Below are positions 363 to 60,362 of a DNA stretch of 64,000 nt, piece by piece. Under the pieces are notes generated by a model. That model had not been told where the DNA came from. It saw only the letters and a list, made by a program, of their open reading frames with translations, and searched no databases. The stretch's first letter is position 1. Each line of letters begins with the position of its first letter. Origin of the DNA: Salisapilia sapeloensis CBS 127946 (taxonomy: Eukaryota; Protista; Oomycota); contig JAADVB010000069.1 in the NCBI GenBank assembly GCA_023334545.1, forward strand, positions 10,599 through 74,598. The letters are read 5' to 3'. A program made the translations under genes and the position numbers.

Positions 363-1736
363 ATGAGCTCCAAGGGTATCTCGGACCGACTTGTTGGACC
401 TTTTTCATGGGAAGATGATGAGCGTGCAACGGATTTAAAGTACAGGATGCTATTGGCAAAAACAGAGAATGTATACACGTCGAATTTGGTTGCAAAAGTC
501 AATGTACCGAGCCGGTATGTAGCTCCATTGGTCCGCAAGGCATTTGCATCTCATCCAGCGTTCTATGAAACTATCGGTCGGAAAGACAAGACCACCAAAT
601 ATAACCTAGTGGTACGTATATGATCTAATGATGCTTTTATTCAAGTCAATGTATCTCTAAACTTTATCAAATAGTGGGATGAGTACGAGAATCTCGACTG
701 GCAGGCAGTGCTCAATGGTTCTGTCATAGCCAACTCCTACTGTGTACGTAAAGGTCTTTCTCGAAAGGCTCAGCTAGCGCTATACCTCAGCAAGCACATG
801 CAGAAGAAACCTGCTTCCATCTTGACCAAGTCGTTTCCTAAGACGCTTATAATCGACACGTGGGAAGCATACGATTCTTCTCTCGCAGCGCTAGGCATCC
901 CGTTCCGGCAGAGACTAGACTCATGCTTGTGGGAAGCCAAGGAGAAAATCGAAACTGATCCGACTCAAATGTGGATTCTCAAGCCTAGCGCTACAAACAA
1001 GGGCGCCGAAGTATGCGTGTTGAATACATTCAAGGAGCTTCGATCATTTATCCATGAATGGACGGACATTCGAGAATGGGTTCTTCAAGCATACATCTCC
1101 AAGCCACTACTACTGCAAAATAAGCGCAAGTTCCATCTGCGTGTTTACGTACTTGCTGTTGGCTGTCTTAAAGTATACATCAGCACCAACGTGCTCATGC
1201 TGAGCGCGTTGGAAGCCTATGATACGGAAAATTATGCCAACAAGTTTGCTCACGTATCCAACACTTTCCAACAGCAAAGCCATCCGGACTTTGTAGAGGA
1301 AGAGTGCGTACTTCTACTCGATGACCTCAATGAGACGCTACGTGAGTGTGGCCACGACCCTTCCACCGCCAAGGCGAAGATCTTGGACGACATTGGCCTC
1401 ATCGTTCATGACTCGTTCGAGGCACTCAAGGGAGAGTTCTCGGTCTTCCAGCCTCTTCCAAACTGCTTTGAGGTGTATGGAGTGGATTTTATGATCGACG
1501 AAGACATCAACACGTGGCTTCTGGAGTTCAATCCAGGCCCGGACTTTAAGCAGACTGGTGGGAGACTCCAGGGCGTGATCGAGTGCTTGATGAAAGACAC
1601 GCTGAGTATCGTCACCGATCACTTCTTCCGACAGGATGGGCAGCAAGTAGAGAGCGCAGGTGCTTATCGTAAAGTGTACGACGAGCAGTGGGGTGCTCAA
1701 GCGAAAGAAGGCGCTTCAATGAAGTTGCTAGATTAA
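363..1736 (+). CDS. Tubulin-tyrosine ligase family ATP-grasp protein (TTL/Pby1-like)
   Basis: Two exons joined by intron 612-674 (GTACGT...ATAG), giving KYNLV-WDEYENLDW. Motifs WILKPSATNKG, RKFHLRVYVL and FEVYGVDFMID...WLLEFNPGPDF. Confidence 0.85.
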
Positions 1737-1773
1737 CTTCAAATACAGTTTTGACGATTGAAAGAGACTTGTA

Positions 1774-4700
1774 TTAAAAGAACTGAGCAGCTTTTTCATC
1801 TGCTTCTCGAAGATACGAAGTCGTTGCGGACGATAGGAACGAGACTCCTTTAACGGCAGATGAAAGTAGACTGGACCCAGCTCCAGAGATGAGTGATCCA
1901 CGCTCATCAGCTCTTCCGTCTCGATCACTTTCTTCAAATAGTGAAAAGTCATTGCCGGAGGAACCTTGTGCAAAGTAGTTGCTCGTCACGTCGTTCGAAG
2001 AGGAACGTCGTTTCTTGAGCTGTCGCTGTCTTTGTGGCACTGGAAGCAATGAAAACCGAGGAACAGGCTCTGCAATTGTTACTCCCGTCACGTCATTCCG
2101 CGATGAAATTACAATCGGCTCTCCTTCTACACTAGCAGTCAGTAGGCGTGTATAAAAGCATAAGGAGGTAGGTACCTATCTCGCTAATGTCGTTCGCTTC
2201 AGACAAGGATGAAAAGAGCAATCGACTGCGTCGGAACTGAGTCACGACGTTCTTTACGACTTGTGGACCATAAATCTCCCAGTCGACTGGATCGACAAAG
2301 TCTCCAACGCGGTCAAAAAGTCTTTTGAGGCTTTTTAAACTATCACTTACATCATCCTCATCAATTTCGTCGCCCCAGCCGAACCGGACAAAGTCAGAGT
2401 ATCCTAATGTCGCTCGAACAAAGTACAAGTCAAAGAGGAACTGGAGACCACATCTCTCTCCAAAGTTGAGACCAAGAGATCTCACTTGAGCCTCCTTGGC
2501 GGACTCTAATCGATCCACAGCAGCGTGGTACGTCTCTGCACTTTGGAGAGTCATTTGTTCCAACAGTGTTTCTCGTACTAGTCGCTCCATAAAGACGAGC
2601 TGCGTGTCATCTACAGACGATCGCCGTAGTTGGTAGTATGCTTCATCCAGAGCAAAGCAACAGAAGAAGAGGAAGGACGAGACGTTTGGCGTCTCTCGAT
2701 ATGGCAGCCATACTTTTTCTTCTTGAGATGGTCCATCCGATGCTGTACCCTCATCCAAGTCCGACAGTTCATTCTCTTCATCTTGTGCATCGTCTAGTGA
2801 AGCAATAGTGAATTCATCCCATCCTTCATGCAAGTTCACCCATTCCTACGTGACAAGAAGTAGTTATGAGTTTTTCATAAGAGTGATAGAAGTATAGTGC
2901 CTACCTCATTGGATAACGAGTACTCTTCGAGCTGAAGCAGTGCATGCAACGGCTGAATTTTCGAATGTACAAGTTCTTTGGACCATTCCTGACAATACGC
3001 TTTTGCTAGCGATTCAAATGTATGGATGAACACATCTGGATAGACATGCTTGTCCACAATTTGCGTTACGAAGAAGAAGGAGTGAAAGCCAAAGGACTGT
3101 TTCTCTCGAATCTCTTCTTCCAAGAAAGCTGGTAGACTGCTTTCTCCATTCGCCTGCATCCCTTCCATTGCCTTTCGTAGCTCTTTTCTTTGCAATCTTC
3201 CATTAACACTCTTTTCAATCGACTCAAAATGACGTTCAGAATGGTCCAAACCGCTCTTTTTTCCTCCTTCTGCTGCCGCTGGAAACAGTAACTTCCTTCG
3301 CTCTGACGTAAGTCCACTAGCAACTGCTCCAATGGCATTCGTAGCTCTCAAGTACGTCATCCTACTTCCGTTTGCGCTCGATAGAAGTTTCTCTTCGAGA
3401 AAGATAACAAGCCGAAACACTGCTCGCATCAACTCTTCCGTCATCACACTCTGCACTTCACTTGATTGAAGAGCTTCAGCACTTTGATAGATAGATGTGA
3501 ACGTATCGTAGAATCCCGTGCGAGTAAAATCTTTCCGGACAGTCGAGTGGAACAAAAGCTCTTCAAACTCTGTCTCGAGTGTCGATACAGCGTCACTGAA
3601 CGTACTGCGCACGAGCGTTCGAGCTCGCTGCCGAAAACACTGTGCAAGTAGAATGGAAAAGAAAGGGGAAGAAGCTTTGCGGTAGGGAGACGACGGTGGT
3701 GTCAGCTGGAGGAAGAGTTGTCTAGATGGAGATGAAGCGGGCGGCTCTTGAACTTCCAGCTTAGTTTGACAGGATGCAAGTGTTGCGATGGAATCGATAC
3801 GAGTCAGTATCACCTGCGCCTTATCTTCGATCTAGTATTCGTGTTAAGCAAAGGCATAAAAGGGGTTGGAGAAGGGCATACCATAGACTGTTGACTTGTA
3901 AGCCATTCCTTCATGGCATCAACCAGTTGATGATTTGTAAGTCTTTCATAGGAAGCTTCTTTCATGTCGGAATATAAAAGAGCTTGGTGTCCATCCTTTG
4001 TCTTATAAAAGATCTCCACGACGTCGTAGAAAGTAGAGATGACGGACCGAACGAGTAAGTTTAACGCAGACAAAACACTTGGCTTTTTGCCTGTAGTACT
4101 ATCTTCCTTTCGTCCAAACCATTTTGCACGGGACTGAAGAAAGAGGTCTAATAAGGATTGCGTCGAAAGATAAGTCGTCGGCTCCAGATGAGCCACAGCT
4201 ACTAGACATCCACTGTAAAAAGCACTCGGCTGTCCTCGTACTTCCAAATACGCTTTCGATCGTGTCACTAGGGTCTATCATTTAACGTTAATACAAGTGT
4301 AGCTACTTTCAACTACGAGCATACCTCTTTCAAGCGTTGTAATGAAGACCACTCGGTCTCTAGGAAAGGCGAAGTATCTCCATGATGCACCTTGGCATAC
4401 ACTGCTTGAGCTTGTTGGAACGTCGTCATAGCTTTAAGCATTTCTCCTCTTTCTATGAAATCCCATATCTCTTCACTAGCATTGACAAGGAGCTGGATAC
4501 TGCTGTGCCTGTCATTATGCTGCAAATCGTTGTTTGAAGGACTTGCTGTTGGCGTCGGAACAGAGATCGGAGTGGTTAAAGCTGAGTGAAGTGTAGATTG
4601 CACTTGTTCCCATCGAGATGGCATTTCTTGTAAGGACTGCTGCAGCTTCATAGCAGAAGAGTGCATGGATACGATTTGGTCCGCAGACTCGATCAGATCA

Positions 4701-51361: not shown

Positions 51362-54300
51362 TTACTCGTCTTGTGCTTGGAAGGCACGATCAAAGTACTC
51401 TAATAACTCTTTTCCATCAAAATCGACACCTGCCGTCCTTCCAAAGCTCTCGACAAACGCTTTCACGTCCTTCATGACTCTACATTTCCATCAGTATCAT
51501 CCACATACACGAGAATAATAAGCTGTGCATACCTTTCTCGACCTTCTGGTGTCTTTGGCTGGACATTTCGGAAGCAAGGAGGTAGTTTCTGCGTGAACAT
51601 TTCAAAGACTCTCGACATGACGTCCTTCATCTCTGTAGGTGGCAAGATTGGATTCAGTACTGAATGGAGCTTGAGCGTGCTATGCGTAATCCCTTTCATC
51701 GCAGCCGTCGGGATTTCCAACGAAGCGTCATCGTAGTCCACTTCCGACACGTTCTCCAAATACCTTCGCATAATCTGGTCTTCCACGATACTCGTGAACT
51801 TGCTAAAGATCTTTTCGTTATGTCCAGCAACTTCTCGCATCACTCGATCCAGTTCCTCCAAAAGGCCTTTCTGACGATCACCAAGATGACTAGATAAAGC
51901 TGCTTTCACATGCGGGACAAGCTCTGCTGTGAGCTCTAGCGACTGAGATGCTAGTCCTAAGTGTCTTGCTGATATACTCTTTAGTCTTGCCACCTGCATC
52001 GCTCCGGCACCAAGGACCAAGTGCGCTGTCTGGTTATTAAAGAGCCGTAGGATCTCGACACTACGCTGCAAGACGTCCGTCGCTAGGACGGAAAAGTTAC
52101 TGACGCAAGATAAATAATTCATGACAATCTCGAGCGTCAAGAGCGCCGACCAGACGACACGGAACGACTTCCCGCCAATATCTACCGTTCGATGCGGCGG
52201 AGTCGTTTCATTTGGAGCGTCTCGATCTTCACTTCGTGTCATTGCAACTCCTCGACCGAGAGACAAGTCTACAAGAGCTTCATGTCGAGCATCAGAGACC
52301 TCACAACTCTTCCATAACTCGTGGTTTAAGGTAGACGTTAGACGATCGGTCTGTGCGACGTGGTACTTTTCAAAGAAGAGCTTTAGTTGGGAGAAGAGAG
52401 CGCCTCGGAGAGTGTAGTCTGTCTTGTGCGTCAGCTCTTCTGTGCTGACTACGAACGACATGGTCGCGTCATGGAGTTTACGTAACTTTGGTAGAGAATA
52501 CGATGCCTGCACTTCCTTTCGGACACCAAAGAGATTGGCAACACTACGTTGTGCAAACTCACACGTCTTTCGGACTACTTCCTCCATCCCTTTTACTACT
52601 TTTTCACCCTGTGTCTTTCCTTTTGATTCATCCACAGTCTCGAATGTGTTCATCTTGCCCTGCATGTTCGACTGGACGATCGACTGGACTAACAATGCTC
52701 TACGTAACAGCAAAAGCAAGTGCTCGAAGATCATTTGCACGCACTGCAAGAATTCATCTGCTTTCAGTGCCTTGAGTTGGACAGATACTTTCGAGTCATT
52801 AGGAGGAGAGACAGCGCTGTCACTTGTGAAGGACGGTGTGCCATCCACATGTGCAGACATGGCGATAGTTTCATTCACCACCGTCTTCACCACGACTTTA
52901 ATCTCCTCCATGAGCTTTTCTCTGTACTTTATCACGACGCCATCTAGTGCTTCCAGTCGGAAGAGCACGTCTGTGAGATTATTCAGCTCTTGTACTTGCT
53001 CATTGTTCTCTACACTAGGAGTTATAGTACGATCTTCCGTCGTGCCGTTTATATCCTCCAACATCCATTCCGAGGATGTAGCAGAGGATAAGAAACGCTG
53101 TGATATTTGCGTCGAAATGAAGACGCGGTAGTTGTGCAGCTTGTCACCTACTGGCTGCAACGCATGGATGGTACTCAGTTCCTCCTTTAGTGTCGACTGA
53201 GCGTCTTCGATCAGATCTAAGGCGCCGATGTAGTCGGCACACTGGACAAGCGCTTCGACGGAAGATTCTGCATTAATGACACTGTCCATCATTGCTGCAA
53301 TGTCGCTGAGCTCTTCTAACCGCTGCTGCTTCCGGTGGAGGCTGACAATATCAAGAGACTTGTTTGCTAGACCATTACGCAAGCGATCCATCGTGGCGCT
53401 AAGCATGCTTTAGGAATGATAATTGATCTCAATAGAGAAAGAAAAGTACCGGAGTGTGGCTACTTGGTTGCAAGCGCCTCCAATGGATGTTTTCATGACT
53501 TCCTGGTCTGCAGAGGCTTCGAAAAATCTGTCGGATCGGGAGGAAACTTGTCGGAGTAGTGTGATTTCAACTTTATCCAGATAAGTTGATAGCTATAGCA
53601 TATCGCCATGAGAATCGAAGCAGATAATAAAAGAAGCTGATTGGAAAAAGATACCTCGTCTTGGAGAGAAGACGACTTGGACTGCATGGCCAGCACTTGC
53701 TCGAAGGTTTCTGGATCTGTAAGATCGAAATCCGGGTCAAAAAATAAAGATGGCACTTCGTCAACACACTTTTTCATATCCTCTACGATCAAGCATATAT
53801 CCTTAGCGTACTTTCACTAGAAATTAAATGATAAACAAATATTTTATACCATCTGCAGCTTCAATAGACGGCACTCGACTAGATGAAAGCTGCTCATGAA
53901 TAGGCCTGACGTGGTTCCGCTCATACTTTGCAGCCAAGTCGCCATGCTTTCGTAAATAGGGCTGGAAATCCACCTCGGCGTCATCCTGCGTCTCTGGAAT
54001 AGCAGGAAAGTCACTGTCTGCTGGAGCGTAGAGCGCATCCATGATAGCGCTACTCCATGTTGCTGCCTGTGGCTGACTTAATACTGCGTGCAAGTTGTGA
54101 CTAAAGGCTGATAAATAGGCATCCTCCTCTGCTGTCGGTTCTACTTGATCTTCCGATCGTGTCGATCTACCTGGTCGAGCAGCTTGGGAGAACCTGTAGT
54201 AGCTGTCTGTACGATCCAAGCTATTGTAACGTCGACCTGTGGGAGTCGGAGGGAAAAATGCGGTTGAAGCATCCTTTGATACGGCTGACGACGTGGAACG

Positions 54301-54450: not shown

Positions 54451-54990
54451 CCTTTGCTATGGCACTTCGTGTCCAAATTTGGTGTTTTTCCACAGAATGA
54501 GTGTACAATTCCAAAGACTTTTGTGTATATCCGTTTTACATGCTGCCTGCTCTTCCGACGCGCGATGATACGTGCGAGTAGCGATCGTGATTGCACATGT
54601 CGTCCGTCTGTGTGTGGTAGTCCGGCTACGACAATATCCGCTTTTGCTGGTAATGGCGCTTAACGATTTTAGCAAAAAGATGGTACAAGCACGTAGTTCT
54701 ACACCAGGTAAGTCGTACTGGATAATCCGTATACTCGACATTCGAATTTCTGGTACGCTCATCCACTTCCGCCCAAGATCAACTGGTGTCGCCGTCGAGA
54801 TCTACTGGTGTCGTCGCTGACAAGATCAGAGGAAGAGAATCAGAAATGTACCCGTCTGCTAGTTTATTTCCCAGAAAACAAGCGAAATACCCACTTATAT
54901 ATTCTATCCGGAGCGCATGTACTAATACGAGACGATGACGCACTCGCCATTTTTTCCATTTTTGATCGATCTCCTTGCGTGTATCCAACG

Positions 54991-57630
54991 ATGCCTCACG
55001 CCAGTTCGCGTTTGTCGTCTGCGAAAGACAAAGTTAAAAGTAAAATTGACCACCATCGGCAAGAGCACTCGGACGGCATGTTTAGCTACTTTTCAAGCAT
55101 CTTTTCCGGACGAGAGGCTCGCCAGCCAGATTCGGCCGAAGCTGTCGATGCGTACTTTAGCAAGACGCCACCACAGGACGAATGGGATCTGTCAAATGTC
55201 CAGAAGGAACTTCAGTCGTTTCTGCAGCATCAACACGTCGTGAATGACCGGCATGTCGCGCTCGTCACGAGTGGAGCGACACTTGTACCGTTAGATGCTG
55301 CCTGTGCGAGCTTTGTCGATCTATCGACGCACTTACATGGTTACCAAGGTCCAGCCTGCGCCGAGTATCTCCTGTCACTCGGATATGCTGTCATCTTCCT
55401 CCATCGCCAAGACTCTCTCCAACCATTTTCTCGTCACTTTCAAAAGTACATCCAGCACGGTGCCTTCTTAAACATGTTTCGAGAGAATGAGCAAGGCGAG
55501 ATGGTTCTCGATGGCTTGGACTTGACGCAGAGAATGAATTTGCAAAGAGTCTTGCATCAATACCACAACACCAGTGACAGGTTATTGAATCTATCATTCA
55601 CATCCGTACAGCACTACCTACATCTACTAAAGCTCTCGTCCCAAGCGGTGGATATCGCAGGACCTCGATGCATGTTGGTACTAGCAGCCACTGTCATGCA
55701 CTACGGCGCACCTGGGACAGAAAAGAACGCTTTGCCACCGTCGTCTGGAAGACGCAAGTCTGGACTGGACTTCTCCGTCCAGTTCCAACCGGTACCGAAT
55801 CTCATCGGACAGATTCGACACAAGTGGTGTCCACGAGCTTTTCTCGTGACGCTCAAGAACCCACTCAAGAGTGCGCACTACGTCAATACAGGTGAGCGGC
55901 TCGAAGCAGCTTACGACGATCTAGAGCGGTGGGGTGTCCACGTCGTCGCTGGGTCGTACCAGCGAGACACACCAGATGAACTACTTCTGGTCAGTGAACA
56001 TGAAGAGACGATCGTTAGTTGTCCGGAAGGAGAAGACATCAACGACGCCTTTGCAGCATCCGTCGCTAAGCTCCATCGAGAGTTCCGACGTACGACCAAA
56101 GTGCTAGCGAAGAGCAAAGGCCTCCTCCTTCTTTCTGCCAAGTTTTCTATGCTAAGAGAAGATGATGTCGTGGAGGATGCAGATGGGAACAAGGGTGCAA
56201 AGTTCGGTCCTGGCGTCAAGATCCGAGCGGATCGTCGAGCAGGCGAGAGTGCACCAGTCTACGAGCTCAAGCATATATTTAAGAACCGATCTCACTGCGC
56301 TCGTGTCCACGTGTGGGAAGCGAATGTAGAGAAAGAGGACGGGTCGATCGTGAAAGATGTTGTCGTCGCATGTAGTCCTGCTGGTACACCGAATACTATT
56401 CGGGATATGTGGGGTGACTTTTGGTCTGGCTGGGCGGAAGACGAGATCGATGAGTTTAAGCAGCAGCTAAGCAGCGTCTCGTTTTCGAATGCACTAGATG
56501 TCGTTGCTCTGTCGATTGCAGGAGACTATACGTCTGCTTCGAATCTACTAGTGTACATGTTCAGTAAGATGCGACTGGCGTGGAGCAAAGGAGAGCAGAC
56601 GCGTATTCGACAGAGTCTGCAGAACATGATATCCGTCTCCTTTGATCGCGGGTTGATCGAACCCTCTGGTATCTCATCGCTAGAAGAACTGACGACACGA
56701 CCTCGCATTCAACGCTTTGAGTCATTGCAACTCGAACCGGAGGATGCTGTCGTTCATCCCAAGTCACGTCCTCGACGCGATAGTGACGAAATGAGTGACT
56801 CAGAGCCAGTGCGCATGAACCGAGCGAAGAAAGTGCGTGTCCATCGAGCTGTGAATACGTACTTGGAGGACATGATAAAGGACGGTTTAATCGATGCTAT
56901 CATGCCGTACGTGGAAGAGGAAGCTTCCATCCACGTGACGGGATACAGTATGGGAGGTATGCTCGGGCAGCTGATCATGATGCACCTCGGAGACCGTGCT
57001 CGTATGCAAGGGCTGGATACATCTCGGCTGAACCTGATTGGCTTCGGTACGCCTCGTGTCGGCGACATGGGCTTTGCCTCTAGGCTCCGACTCATGTTCG
57101 ATCCAGAGCAGTTGCTCATTGTCATGCATCCGTCGGATGTTGTCCATGCCTTCCCACCGACGTCGGAAGGGTATGTGGATGCGTGTCACAAGATCTTTTT
57201 GCATGAAGACGGACTCGGACTAGGTCGACGCACAGCCTCGACGTTCTCTCTCTTGCCAGTAGCCAAGAGCATCGATAAAATGTTCCAAGAATCGTCTCGC
57301 AAATCCCAGGCAGAGAACACCGACTGTAATCTTTGTGGTAGCAAGACTCATCCGACAGCCCAGCATCGATGCCGCTACTGCACGGAAAGAGGTACGCATC
57401 GTGGCAGTGACTGTCCGAATCGAGATCAACCCTGTATGCTATGTGGACACTCGAACCACTGCACGGGCGAACACAAGTGCAAGGTGTGTCAGCAGCACGG
57501 ACATCGTGGACGAGAGTGCCATGCACAGCGTGATGTGGGTGTGTCGGAGCTCCTGACGTTCTTCCGATATCACCACTTTTTATATTACAATTCGAATTTG
57601 AAGACGGCGGTCGAGTTCACGGCGGAGTAA
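54991..57630 (+). CDS. Fusion protein: PPCS (CoaB/DFP)-like domain + class-3 lipase + tandem zinc knuckles; 879 aa, intronless
   Basis: PPCS-like VALVTSGATLVPLD, AEYLLSLGYAVIFLHR and VPNLIGQIRHKWCPRAFLV. Lipase-like VTGYSMGG, FGTPRVGD and HPSDVVHAFPP. Four CxxC-x4/5-H-x4-H/C units. Confidence 0.8.
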   Translation: MPHASSRLSSAKDKVKSKIDHHRQEHSDGMFSYFSSIFSGREARQPDSAEAVDAYFSKTPPQDEWDLSNVQKELQSFLQHQHVVNDRHVALVTSGATLVPLDAACASFVDLSTHLHGYQGPACAEYLLSLGYAVIFLHRQDSLQPFSRHFQKYIQHGAFLNMFRENEQGEMVLDGLDLTQRMNLQRVLHQYHNTSDRLLNLSFTSVQHYLHLLKLSSQAVDIAGPRCMLVLAATVMHYGAPGTEKNALPPSSGRRKSGLDFSVQFQPVPNLIGQIRHKWCPRAFLVTLKNPLKSAHYVNTGERLEAAYDDLERWGVHVVAGSYQRDTPDELLLVSEHEETIVSCPEGEDINDAFAASVAKLHREFRRTTKVLAKSKGLLLLSAKFSMLREDDVVEDADGNKGAKFGPGVKIRADRRAGESAPVYELKHIFKNRSHCARVHVWEANVEKEDGSIVKDVVVACSPAGTPNTIRDMWGDFWSGWAEDEIDEFKQQLSSVSFSNALDVVALSIAGDYTSASNLLVYMFSKMRLAWSKGEQTRIRQSLQNMISVSFDRGLIEPSGISSLEELTTRPRIQRFESLQLEPEDAVVHPKSRPRRDSDEMSDSEPVRMNRAKKVRVHRAVNTYLEDMIKDGLIDAIMPYVEEEASIHVTGYSMGGMLGQLIMMHLGDRARMQGLDTSRLNLIGFGTPRVGDMGFASRLRLMFDPEQLLIVMHPSDVVHAFPPTSEGYVDACHKIFLHEDGLGLGRRTASTFSLLPVAKSIDKMFQESSRKSQAENTDCNLCGSKTHPTAQHRCRYCTERGTHRGSDCPNRDQPCMLCGHSNHCTGEHKCKVCQQHGHRGRECHAQRDVGVSELLTFFRYHHFLYYNSNLKTAVEFTAE

Positions 57631-57682: not shown

Positions 57683-58927
57683 CTAGTTGATTTGGAGGCT
57701 TTGGAGAGAGGTGGAATGGTCCGGAGGAAAGAGCGACCAGAGGGCTAGTTTATGGTCTTTGGACGCTGAGGCAAGGAGAGAACTGTCCTTGCTAAAGTCG
57801 AGAGCATAGACACTTTCCTGGTGATGTCGGAGGATTGCTAGTGGCTTCAGAGTACGAAGGTGGAAGATACGGACCCTATGCATGGGTGAGGTGGATAAAC
57901 GGCTCTGGAAAGGATGAAGCTACGTACCGATGGTCCCATCCAGCACTAGCAAAGATGCGCTGGTCTGGACGTATACGAACGTCACTCGTTCCTTCGTGGT
58001 TGAGATTGCCAAACGATTTGGACGTTAGTGTAAGAGATGATTCGTCAAAAGCTATGCGATGAAGGGAGGTGTCCGCAGAGCCGCAGAAGATAGATTTGCC
58101 ATCCTGAGCAGCATCCAATGCAAGCACTAGCATATAGAGTTAGTGGAATTTACAATAAGATAAGAAAAACGCATACAAGGTTTGTTATCGCTGGTGGCAT
58201 TTACTTCTGTGAGAAGCTTTCCATTGTTACGAATGTCTAGGACAGATAGACACCCGCTTTCGAATCCAGTAGCCAAGTACGTCGCATTGGTTGTCTGGAA
58301 GAGACGTAGCGCCATACACATGCCTATAGATTTTCAATTACTATATAGTATCTCGTGAGTATGATTAGGAAGGTCTTCACCTCTGCCAATCTGATTATCA
58401 GGGAGATGAATGACCGACTGAGGGACGCTGGATGCAGCTCTCCGGTCGTAGACAAAAAGCTACAGCAGATGCACGTTAGATAATAATAAATTTTAGTGCA
58501 GACAGAATCGAGCAAGACTAACTTGGCTATTTTCACTGCTAGGACAGACGATAATGTTTCTAGCATTGGAATTCGCATCTTGCATCGTTGCTGCTTTGGC
58601 AAAGCCAAAGCTACCACTATAGTATTCCTGCAGTGGCTTTGCAGACTGTCCAAAGCTTTCCACATCCCACACTTTTATAAATCCGTCTCTTCCATGCGTG
58701 AGAAGCTCTTTTTGCTCTGCATGCATGCGAGCGACTTGCAGTACTCCAGCAGCCGAATGAGCTTGATCCTGTATCACGCTCGGACGACGCGTCTTTAAGC
58801 TCCATATCTTCACTGATCCATCTGCAGCACCAGAGCAAAGTGTAGTATCATTTAAGAAAGCTACAGCATTCACGGGTGCATTGTGACCACGCAAGACAGC
58901 GATCGGACCCGGCGTCTTGGTACTCAT
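57683..58927 (-). CDS. GNB1L: WD40 protein GNB1L/ASA1-like (multi-exon)
   Basis: PIAVLRGHNAPVNAVAF, THGRDGFIKVW, LATGFESG, FASAGWDHRVRIF and LAILRHHQESVYALDF...ASASKDHKLALWSLFP. Confidence 0.8.
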
Positions 58928-59149
58928 TTCGACATTTGCGACGTTCGTGTCTTGTCCGTAACTGACATCATTTCCGTTAAGCATAGAAATAACAACTTCG
59001 ACGTCCATGTTGAAGATGGACATTATGAACGTTGAGACTGGTTTTTCCTGGAGAAGAGGCTAGAGTACGTTTTATTTATCATCCATTTGGAAAAAGCACA
59101 AGCACCTGCGAGGAAAAGCTGAGACAGAAATCGATTTTGCAAAGTGAGC

Positions 59150-60362
59150 ATGCTGGCTTTCTTTCAGTCACTATTATATGGTGAGAACGGACTTCGAGAT
59201 GTTCACATGTACCTCGTACAGGAAGGAGATACCGTAGCTGGGATTGCTGCTCGGTACGCATCTTTGTAGTAGGCTGTAGACGAAAAAAATATGGTGGATG
59301 TTTAAAATCGTCGATAGTCATGGTATGACGGAAGAGGAGCTCAAGGCTTTGAACGAGTTGGCGACAGATGAGGTGCTTCCAGACCAGGAATTAAAGGTCT
59401 ATCGACGTGTACGCAGCCAAAGTTTACCAATCCTCCGTCATGAGGAGAATGAGCGGAGCATCGGTGGCTACGAAGCTGAGGTCATGCCCATTCGGGAAGA
59501 GTATGAGCCAACCGAAACAGAGCCAGACATGTAACGATCTACTGTTTGATATCCCTCGTACTCGTCCATGACATACATGTAGGTTCGACGTCAATCTGAA
59601 AGCCAAAGTACCAACGCAAATGACGCAGCAGTCCTCTCATTGCAAGCAGCGCTCGCGCTCGGAGCGTGTGCTACCTCAATACGAACGAGAGGACGAAGCC
59701 AACAAGACGGAACCTCCCTTTCCAAATCTCCTTGGCACAGTTGATAACCAGGAGATCTTGGCCGATACCAACTTGTCACAGACACTTGTGCCTAAGCTCG
59801 AGTTCATGCTGCCATATCGGTACCATGGGTATGACTGGGAAGTGCTCTATAGTCTCCGTCAGCATGGCTGTAGTCTACAATCACTCATGCGTAAAGTCCG
59901 TGGACGGTCCCCGACACTCGTGATCATCGAAACGACACAAAAGGATGTCTTTGGTGGCTTTGTCGTTGGTCCGTGGCATTCCTCTGGTGCATACTATGGC
60001 AATGGCGAGTGCTTTGTCTTCACTTGTAAACCTCGCTTCGAGTGCTTCACTTGGAAACAGACAAACACCATGTGCATGCTCAGCAATAAGAAGTGCATTG
60101 CCATGGGTGGTGGGTAAGATAATCCTCTATTACAGCTCGAAGTGCATACCTGATAAGAGTATCTAGTGGTGGCTTTGCATGGATTCTTAATAGCGACCTA
60201 TCTCGTGGCTCTACCTCCAAATCAACAACATTTGGCAACCGGTACCTTATTCGTGTATACTAGAATGATGTCATCATCTCATCTCGTTATAGTCCATTGG
60301 CACAAGCGGAAGACTTTGATGTGCTTAGTGTGGAAGTCTGGGGCTTTGTCATGAAAGACTGA
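59150..60362 (+). CDS. LysM + TLDc protein (OXR1/NCOA7-like), multi-exon
   Basis: LysM YLVQEGDTVAGIAAR-HGMTEEELKALN; TLDc LYSLRQHGCSL, VFGGF, YYGNGECFVF and MGGG; ends VEVWGFVMKD*. Confidence 0.85.

Follow-up and report, generated by a model that had tools for sequence, protein, structure and literature searches.

The pairing of a DFP domain with a class 3 lipase in one protein was catalogued in Phytophthora sojae and Phytophthora ramorum in 2009, in a supplement whose entries give it as a novel fusion, Ps129974 among them (Morris et al., PLoS One 4:e6133, supplement; PMC2705460). The gene described here carries the same pair. It lies in a 64,000-nucleotide stretch of the oomycete Salisapilia sapeloensis CBS 127946 (assembly GCA_023334545.1, contig JAADVB010000069.1, positions 10,599 to 74,598 of the forward strand), referred to below as the window, and it encodes a PPCS-fold domain, a class 3 lipase and a zinc-knuckle cassette in a single frame. 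It is an orthologue of a conserved, catalogued and functionally uncharacterised stramenopile family; Ps129974, judged by its identical domain pair, would be another. Domain order is the same in the listed fusion and in the database orthologues, with full-length collinear homology at 57% identity for Phytophthora, 61% for Lagenidium and 45% for Saprolegnia. The entries of the 2009 list mention no zinc-knuckle cassette and no loss of catalytic residues of PPCS. Database orthologues, for example P. infestans PITG_05669, Saprolegnia parasitica SPRG_12558 and Nannochloropsis salina NSK_000921, are automatically annotated as “hypothetical”, “triacylglycerol lipase” or “phosphopantothenate-cysteine ligase”. 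The original prediction for this locus, made from the sequence, held the gene to be the best candidate for a new system in the window. This view has to give way to that of a conserved single-gene family, present in oomycetes and in a eustigmatophyte alga, whose domain pair was on record in 2009. It was right that the combination is uncharacterised, since searches of the literature, both by member accession and by topic, turned up no functional study of the fusion family.

For the N-terminal part, the reference enzymes are human PPCS (1p9o/7edz) and yeast Cab2 (6ai8). In one published account (PMC12985681), human Asn59 is given as catalytic and strictly conserved, Asp183 as coordinating metal, and Arg55, Ala179 and Ala180 as binding phosphopantothenate, while Pro211-Lys212 are invariably kept within the eukaryotic nucleotide motif II and Lys231 and Ser198' touch the nucleotide. 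According to the same source, Plasmodium falciparum likewise keeps a second PPCS paralogue, the two assembling via the PPCS dimer interface. Both Plasmodium paralogues retain the full catalytic set, whereas the fusion paralogue has lost it and is joined to a lipase (PMC12985681).

For the C-terminal part, the enzymes compared were the fungal class 3 Rhizomucor miehei lipase (4tgl), Thermomyces lanuginosus lipase and Aspergillus niger feruloyl esterase A (FaeA, 2ix9). The window protein has in common with them the alpha/beta-hydrolase fold, the GxSxG elbow, the Asp in D-x-V-x-x-x-P-P and a C-terminal His, at a sequence identity of 17-21%. It differs in carrying SPAG instead of FRG(S/T), a helical insertion of about 140 residues in place of a lid of about 15, and a stretch between Asp and His that is longer by about 90 residues, the four zinc knuckles among them. 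Moreover, the fungal lipases are secreted, whereas the window protein reads as intracellular, with no signal peptide seen by eye.

We consider it rather probable that the fusion protein works in the cytosol as an acyl-hydrolase with a Ser-Asp-His triad, and that it also carries an expanded helical lid, an interaction module of four zinc sites and a non-catalytic scaffold of the PPCS fold that may serve as a dimeriser. Such a serine hydrolase of the class 3 fold, soluble and intracellular, would act through Ser653, Asp716 and His861, the helical insertion at the lid position would probably control access to the active site, and the four zinc knuckles beside the His loop would serve as a portable binding module. 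The dead PPCS module would most likely be a structural scaffold. Since PPCS is obligately dimeric, the module may bring two lipase chains together, and it may also be a remodelled domain for binding a ligand or a partner.

One polypeptide, three modules

The single uninterrupted open reading frame and the three-part architecture proposed by the original prediction are both borne out, with every named element found at its coordinates (Table 1). The plus-strand frame runs without stop codons from 54808 to 57630, which is 940 codons, and is collinear with 40 full-length homologues, free of frame breaks, and with the N. salina protein TFJ87570.1. Two in-frame ATGs are available, at 54991 (giving 879 residues) and at 55078, the latter aligning with the start of most orthologues (MALWGTL...); either could be the true start.

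The junction between the PPCS and lipase parts is among the best-conserved stretches of the fusion protein. It is modelled as a single helix with a predicted local distance difference test (pLDDT) score of 74-87 in the full-length model, and His362, Leu372, Leu378, Ala383, Lys384 and Phe385 are invariant in the family alignment. These observations bear on the possibility that a PPCS-like gene and a lipase gene are simply adjacent and happen to share a frame. Some database orthologue models are indeed split or truncated (P0042, P0046, P0047, P0132). However, 2.6 kb pass here without any stop codon, the highly conserved junction lies within a single modelled helix, the 40 aligned homologues and the eustigmatophyte protein preserve order and frame, and the lipase fold starts right behind the junction helix, where a separate start would not fit. 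With a continuous frame, a conserved junction helix and collinear homologues, a two-gene artefact is so improbable that we rule it out.

The PPCS-fold module and its remodelled pocket

In a phmmer search against PDB, the PPCS-like region matches human PPCS (7edz/1p9o) over residues 85-308 with E 3e-21 and yeast Cab2 with E 4e-18. The full-length AlphaFold model has a mean pLDDT of 65, with most of the PPCS part at 70-94, and Foldseek aligned it to 7edz at E 8e-19 with a template modelling (TM) score of 0.71 on the target. By both searches, the region in which a CoaB/PPCS-like domain had been proposed (about 55140-56085) has the PPCS fold. At E <= 0.01, Pfam DFP (PF04127) recognises 36 of the family's 41 members, and the window copy has no match to it even at E <= 10, being one of the five members that no longer match.

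Key residues of PPCS, in human numbering, were mapped through a HMMER alignment onto an alignment of 41 sequences, namely the window protein and its 40 homologues (Table 1). The module has the fold in common with human PPCS and yeast Cab2, and also the eukaryote-type features Pro211, Lys231 and the extra helical region. It differs from them in being fused to a lipase, in lacking the equivalents of Asn59 and Arg55 family-wide, in the replacement of Gly44, which turns motif I from SGGT into SGAT or SGST, and in an NFSSG loop altered by a two-residue insertion. The loop that in PPCS reaches into the partner's active site (residues ~240-265 here) is of variable length and poorly modelled, with insertions of ~40 residues in Phytophthora. 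Asn59, Arg55, Asp183 and Lys212 are likewise missing from the N. salina protein.

Because catalytic and binding residues of PPCS are lost across the family, the module looks like a PPCS-derived pseudoenzyme whose pocket has been remodelled yet remains partly constrained. Binding of the original PPCS ligands is doubtful, given that Arg55 and Asn59 (and Asp183 in the window copy) are lost and Lys212 is replaced. We reject an active PPCS on the grounds of the residue losses and of a canonical PPCS gene elsewhere in the same genome. In this second gene the motifs SGGT, VRFLDNFSTGSRG, AAAVSDF, EHKIQS and VPKLL are intact, two short introns with stop codons break the frame, and its product is the sole Pfam DFP match across the 22.4-Mb assembly. 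It is 31% identical to the N-terminal domain of the fusion protein, as measured by tblastn reading through the two introns with the exons unjoined. Phosphopantothenoylcysteine would thus be made by the separate canonical enzyme and no longer by the module of the fusion.

The co-occurrence of a canonical PPCS and a fusion paralogue in one genome raises the possibility of a tether to CoA (coenzyme A) synthesis, in which the dead PPCS heterodimerises with the canonical enzyme or docks on partners, placing the lipase beside CoA synthesis and coupling fatty-acid release to CoA supply. Such a role would fit the dimeric state in which PPCS enzymes function and the heteromeric complex of P. falciparum PPCS1 and PPCS2 (PMC12985681), and the PPCS core, including its eukaryote-specific region, is retained in the fusion. 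We nevertheless regard a tether as quite improbable, as identity to the genome's own canonical PPCS is just 31% and the loop that contributes to the dimer is variable, with its long insertions in Phytophthora.

The state of the pocket also bears on the suggestion of the original prediction that a CoA-pathway metabolite or nucleotide gates the lipase. Here the remodelled pocket would bind a nucleotide or CoA, dephospho-CoA, acyl-CoA or phosphopantetheine, either for allosteric control or to present an acyl-thioester; with a thioester presented to the Ser-Asp-His site, the protein would act as a thioesterase on acyl-CoA or acyl-carrier substrates. Though altered, the pocket is still constrained: Asp110 is conserved in 40 of the 41 sequences, Asn270 and Lys289 in 38 each, and Gly95, Gly120, Glu125 and Pro269 are invariant. 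Small hydrophobic residues replace the catalytic Asn (Val, Leu or Ala in 31/41), and the two domains appear from the model to be linked by a rigid, conserved helix. It is also textbook knowledge that PPCS binds both halves of CoA together, namely a nucleotide and a phosphopantothenoyl group. Set against this are the loss of Arg55, important in phosphopantothenate binding, the replacement of Lys212 in nucleotide motif II, the altered motif I (SGAT/SGST) and the two-residue insertion in the NFSSG loop. With Asn59 gone as well, and Asp183 in the window copy, the suggestion is not supported as it was put, and we judge metabolite gating in this wider form to be unlikely.

The lipase fold, its lid region and the zinc-knuckle cassette

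The class 3 lipase region spans residues ~371-879. Pfam Lipase_3 (PF01764) matches residues 609-724 with 42.9 bits against a cut-off of 22, and all 41 family members score above that cut-off. In a profile search of the genome, nine Lipase_3 matches exceed the cut-off, and the sixth rank of the fusion gene, with 46.6 bits, places it among the genome's more divergent class 3 lipases. A second model, of residues 371-879 alone (mean pLDDT 72), aligns by VIA-align to FaeA with Z 21.3 and a root-mean-square deviation of 2.2 A over 202 residues, and to R. miehei lipase with Z 20.5 over 219 residues. The C-terminal part is therefore modelled as an alpha/beta hydrolase of the class 3 fold, and the GYSMGG elbow, FGTPRVGD, the Asp at 57136 and the candidate His at 57571-57576 named by the original prediction are all present. 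Between the two adjacent His residues, His861 is the conserved one and recurs in the relatives from Thecamoeba and eustigmatophytes; its neighbour His862 is conserved in just 31 of the 41 sequences.

In the lipase-half model, the structural match with FaeA and R. miehei lipase already begins at residue 1, so that no linker separates the PPCS and lipase parts. The stretch previously taken for one, residues 371-610, consists of the N-terminal strands of the lipase fold and the conserved helical insertion. The (F/C)SPAG motif, in which SPAG is present in 40/41, is located where fungal class 3 lipases have their FRG(S/T) oxyanion-hole strand. By comparison with the fungal lipases, the ~140-residue insertion would occupy the lid position; it is modelled as helices, part of them at low pLDDT, and Trp531, Glu535, Thr537, Arg538, Arg540, Gln541, Asn545 and Arg553 are invariant within it. 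Hydrophobic segments of the membrane-span type were not found in the protein, the highest 19-residue Kyte-Doolittle mean being 1.47, and the N-termini of the orthologues are unlike a signal peptide when judged by eye.

The four Cys/His knuckle units of the original prediction are present between Asp716 and His861, and their 16 ligands, each conserved in 38-40 of the 41 sequences, are predicted to form four zinc sites. The region has a pLDDT of 63-85 in the lipase-half model. The exact CX2CX4HX4C spacing occurs in just one of the four units (residues 830-843), none of the 41 family members matches Pfam zf-CCHC (PF00098), and a PDB sequence search with the cassette returned no matching solved structure. 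Canonical knuckles of the retroviral CCHC type are thus unsupported by the Pfam and PDB sequence searches.

The cassette also occurs in unrelated proteins and may therefore be a portable interaction module. It is all that the family has in common with a protein of Chromera velia and one of Pythium insidiosum. The Chromera protein (P0076, Cvel_15389) is metacaspase-like, with a caspase (Peptidase_C14) domain and three CCHH-x-CCHC cassettes at its C-terminus, which means that stramenopiles and a chromerid alveolate have the cassette in common. The window's own genome encodes a 439-residue protein with the pattern C-x2-C-x5-H-x4-H-x-C-x2-C-x5-H-x4-C and a conserved C-terminal region, which has no Pfam match and appears to correspond to Pythium insidiosum KAJ0400460.1. 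Gating by nucleic acid, as originally suggested, drew on the generic reputation of CCHC knuckles; with no zf-CCHC match in the family and the cassette present in unrelated proteins, it is not supported.

A lipase fold with two accessory binding modules could also be a non-catalytic scaffold resembling plant EDS1/PAD4, with the knuckles and the PPCS fold binding partners or small molecules and hydrolysis irrelevant. Members of the EDS1 family are among the structural matches (Z 13-15), and EDS1 itself retains a class 3 triad that is dispensable for its signalling, so that triad conservation is no proof of activity. However, the scores of the fungal lipases and of FaeA are far higher (Z 18-21 versus 13-15), and the elbow, Asp motif, His and SPAG strand have been kept from Amoebozoa to oomycetes, as under catalytic constraint. 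We therefore regard such a scaffold as improbable.

Returning to the acyl-hydrolase with a PPCS-fold scaffold, several points weigh against it. The EDS1 precedent is one. In both models the loops carrying Asp716 and His861 stay under a pLDDT of 60, and the His861 region is below 50. About half of the nucleotide-pocket features persist (Gly43, Thr45 in most members, Gly66, Glu71, Pro211, Lys231), and some of the replacements are themselves conserved (Asn270, Thr/Ser234); with the pocket partly surviving, some ligand may bind, and a role as scaffold only would then be wrong. Dimerisation is argued purely from the behaviour of PPCS, and the loop that contributes to the dimer there is variable and poorly modelled here. 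More generally, the analysis shows the architecture, the folds, the lost and retained residues and the distribution, and the hydrolase activity, dimerisation and regulatory roles are inferred.

A broader possibility, doubtful in our view, is a stramenopile-specific design in which the dead PPCS serves as a sensor of CoA, pantetheine or nucleotide, or as a tether to the CoA-synthesising complex, and controls a lipase or thioesterase, with the knuckles providing a second input or localisation. If this were true, fatty-acid release would be coupled directly to CoA availability, and sensing of CoA metabolites by the dead PPCS, or its docking on the CoA pathway, would constitute a new link between lipolysis and cofactor supply. 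It could also offer a lineage-specific handle on lipid turnover in oomycetes and Nannochloropsis.

Distribution and genomic surroundings

A word-indexed protein search found 45 proteins, nearly all of them full-length and collinear, and the 40 full-length collinear homologues that were aligned are 40-61% identical to the window protein. The 26 best cover 92-97% of the query at 53-61% identity. Identity is 61% for Lagenidium, 57-60% for Globisporangium and Pythium, 53-57% for Phytophthora and downy mildews, and 42-45% for Saprolegnia, Achlya and Aphanomyces. The named aligned homologues are oomycetes, and two of the remaining two dozen are clearly more divergent. The exact window protein is absent from a collection of 15 billion proteins, where its best relative is only 61% identical; it thus represents an oomycete lineage without an annotated close relative in that collection.

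When the lipase half was searched exhaustively against 1.84 billion representatives, only 79 proteins reached E <= 1e-3. Proteins of Nannochloropsis and Microchloropsis (Eustigmatophyceae) are among these relatives, and we therefore reject a distribution restricted to oomycetes. The N. salina protein TFJ87570.1 (1074 residues) is collinear over the three modules (E 9e-81 and 2e-69), 33-42% identical, and matches both Pfam DFP and Lipase_3. A transcript of the amoebozoan Thecamoeba quadrilineata (EP01103_P001614, P0058) has LLLSAKF, FSPAG, GYSMG, the Asp motif and H..YY in common with the family and lacks the PPCS-like domain and the zinc cassette. This points to an older lipase core that gained the two modules within the stramenopile lineage. 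Besides this lipase-only relative, no other identified relative with the family-specific lipase features was found among the 1.84 billion representatives. It is likely that the PPCS-like domain and the cassette joined the lipase core before oomycetes and eustigmatophytes split; the timing of the PPCS duplication would follow solely from its presence in both groups.

The family has been kept across oomycetes, which include major pathogens of crops and fish, and in Nannochloropsis, which serves as a model in algal oil production. It is a lineage-restricted and unstudied family of putative lipid enzymes that carries what appears to be a clear example of an enzyme turned pseudoenzyme. Compared with the earlier record, the present analysis adds the residue-level evidence for a pseudoenzyme and a separate canonical PPCS in the same genome. 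It also extends the family to eustigmatophytes, identifies a lipase-only relative in Amoebozoa and recognises the double-knuckle cassette as a shared module.

Table 1. Features of the fusion gene, residue correspondences with human PPCS, and other genes mentioned in the text. Positions are those of the window unless another locus is given; fractions refer to the 41-sequence alignment.
Feature	Position	Strand	Basis or remark
Whole coding sequence, 879 residues + stop	54991..57630	+	Open reading frame scan; intronless reading suffices
Eukaryotic-type PPCS-fold domain, probably catalytically dead, residues ~50-365	55138..56085	+	phmmer, Foldseek, residue mapping
PPCS/lipase junction, one long predicted helix, residues 350-385, into the LLLLSAKF motif of the lipase half	56038..56145	+	AlphaFold model and alignment
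N-terminal beta-strands of the lipase fold, ending in (F/C)SPAG	56146..56388	+	Model, pLDDT about 90
Helical insertion of ~140 residues at the lipase-lid position, motif W..GEQTR.RQ...N	56389..56820	+	Models and alignment
Lipase core: GYSMGG elbow, FGTPRVGD, HPSDVVHAFPP	56821..57201	+	Pfam Lipase_3
Putative nucleophile Ser653 in GYSMGG (56941-56958)	56947-56949	+	Invariant in 41
Asp716 in HPSDVVHAFPP	57136-57138	+	Invariant in 41
Two double zinc-knuckle cassettes, residues 779-843	57325..57519	+	Pattern, between Asp716 and His861
Cassette 1, residues 779-808			CX2CX4HX4H-x-CX2CX5HX4C; units CCHH 779-792, CCHC (X5) 794-808
Cassette 2, residues 815-843			CX2CX4HX4H-x-CX2CX4HX4C; units CCHH 815-828, CCHC 830-843
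His861, candidate catalytic His in FRYHHFLYY	57571..57573	+	His in 39/41
Leu111 (human Asn59)			0/41 Asn (Val 11, Leu 10, Ala 10, others)
Ser107 (human Arg55)			0/41 Arg
Ala96 (human Gly44, motif I)			Ala or Ser in 39/41
His237 (human Asp183)			Asp in 31/41
Asn270 (human Lys212)			Asn in 38/41
Pro269 (human Pro211)			Invariant in 41
Lys289 (human Lys231)			Kept in 38/41
Canonical PPCS gene	G000:C2, locus L001 about 1380-2460	-	Intact motifs
439-residue protein with four or five double zinc-knuckle cassettes	G000:C1333, locus L003 730-2049	-	Window's genome
Vps54 (GARP complex) gene	51472-53406	-	Neighbour
WD40-repeat gene, split by introns	57876-59023	-	Neighbour
TLDc-domain gene, first exon	59620-60117	+	Neighbour

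A functional link of the neighbouring Vps54, WD40-repeat and TLDc-domain genes to the lipase gene is not apparent. The window is eukaryotic: these neighbours are ordinary housekeeping genes, and the best matches of the fusion protein are all from oomycetes.

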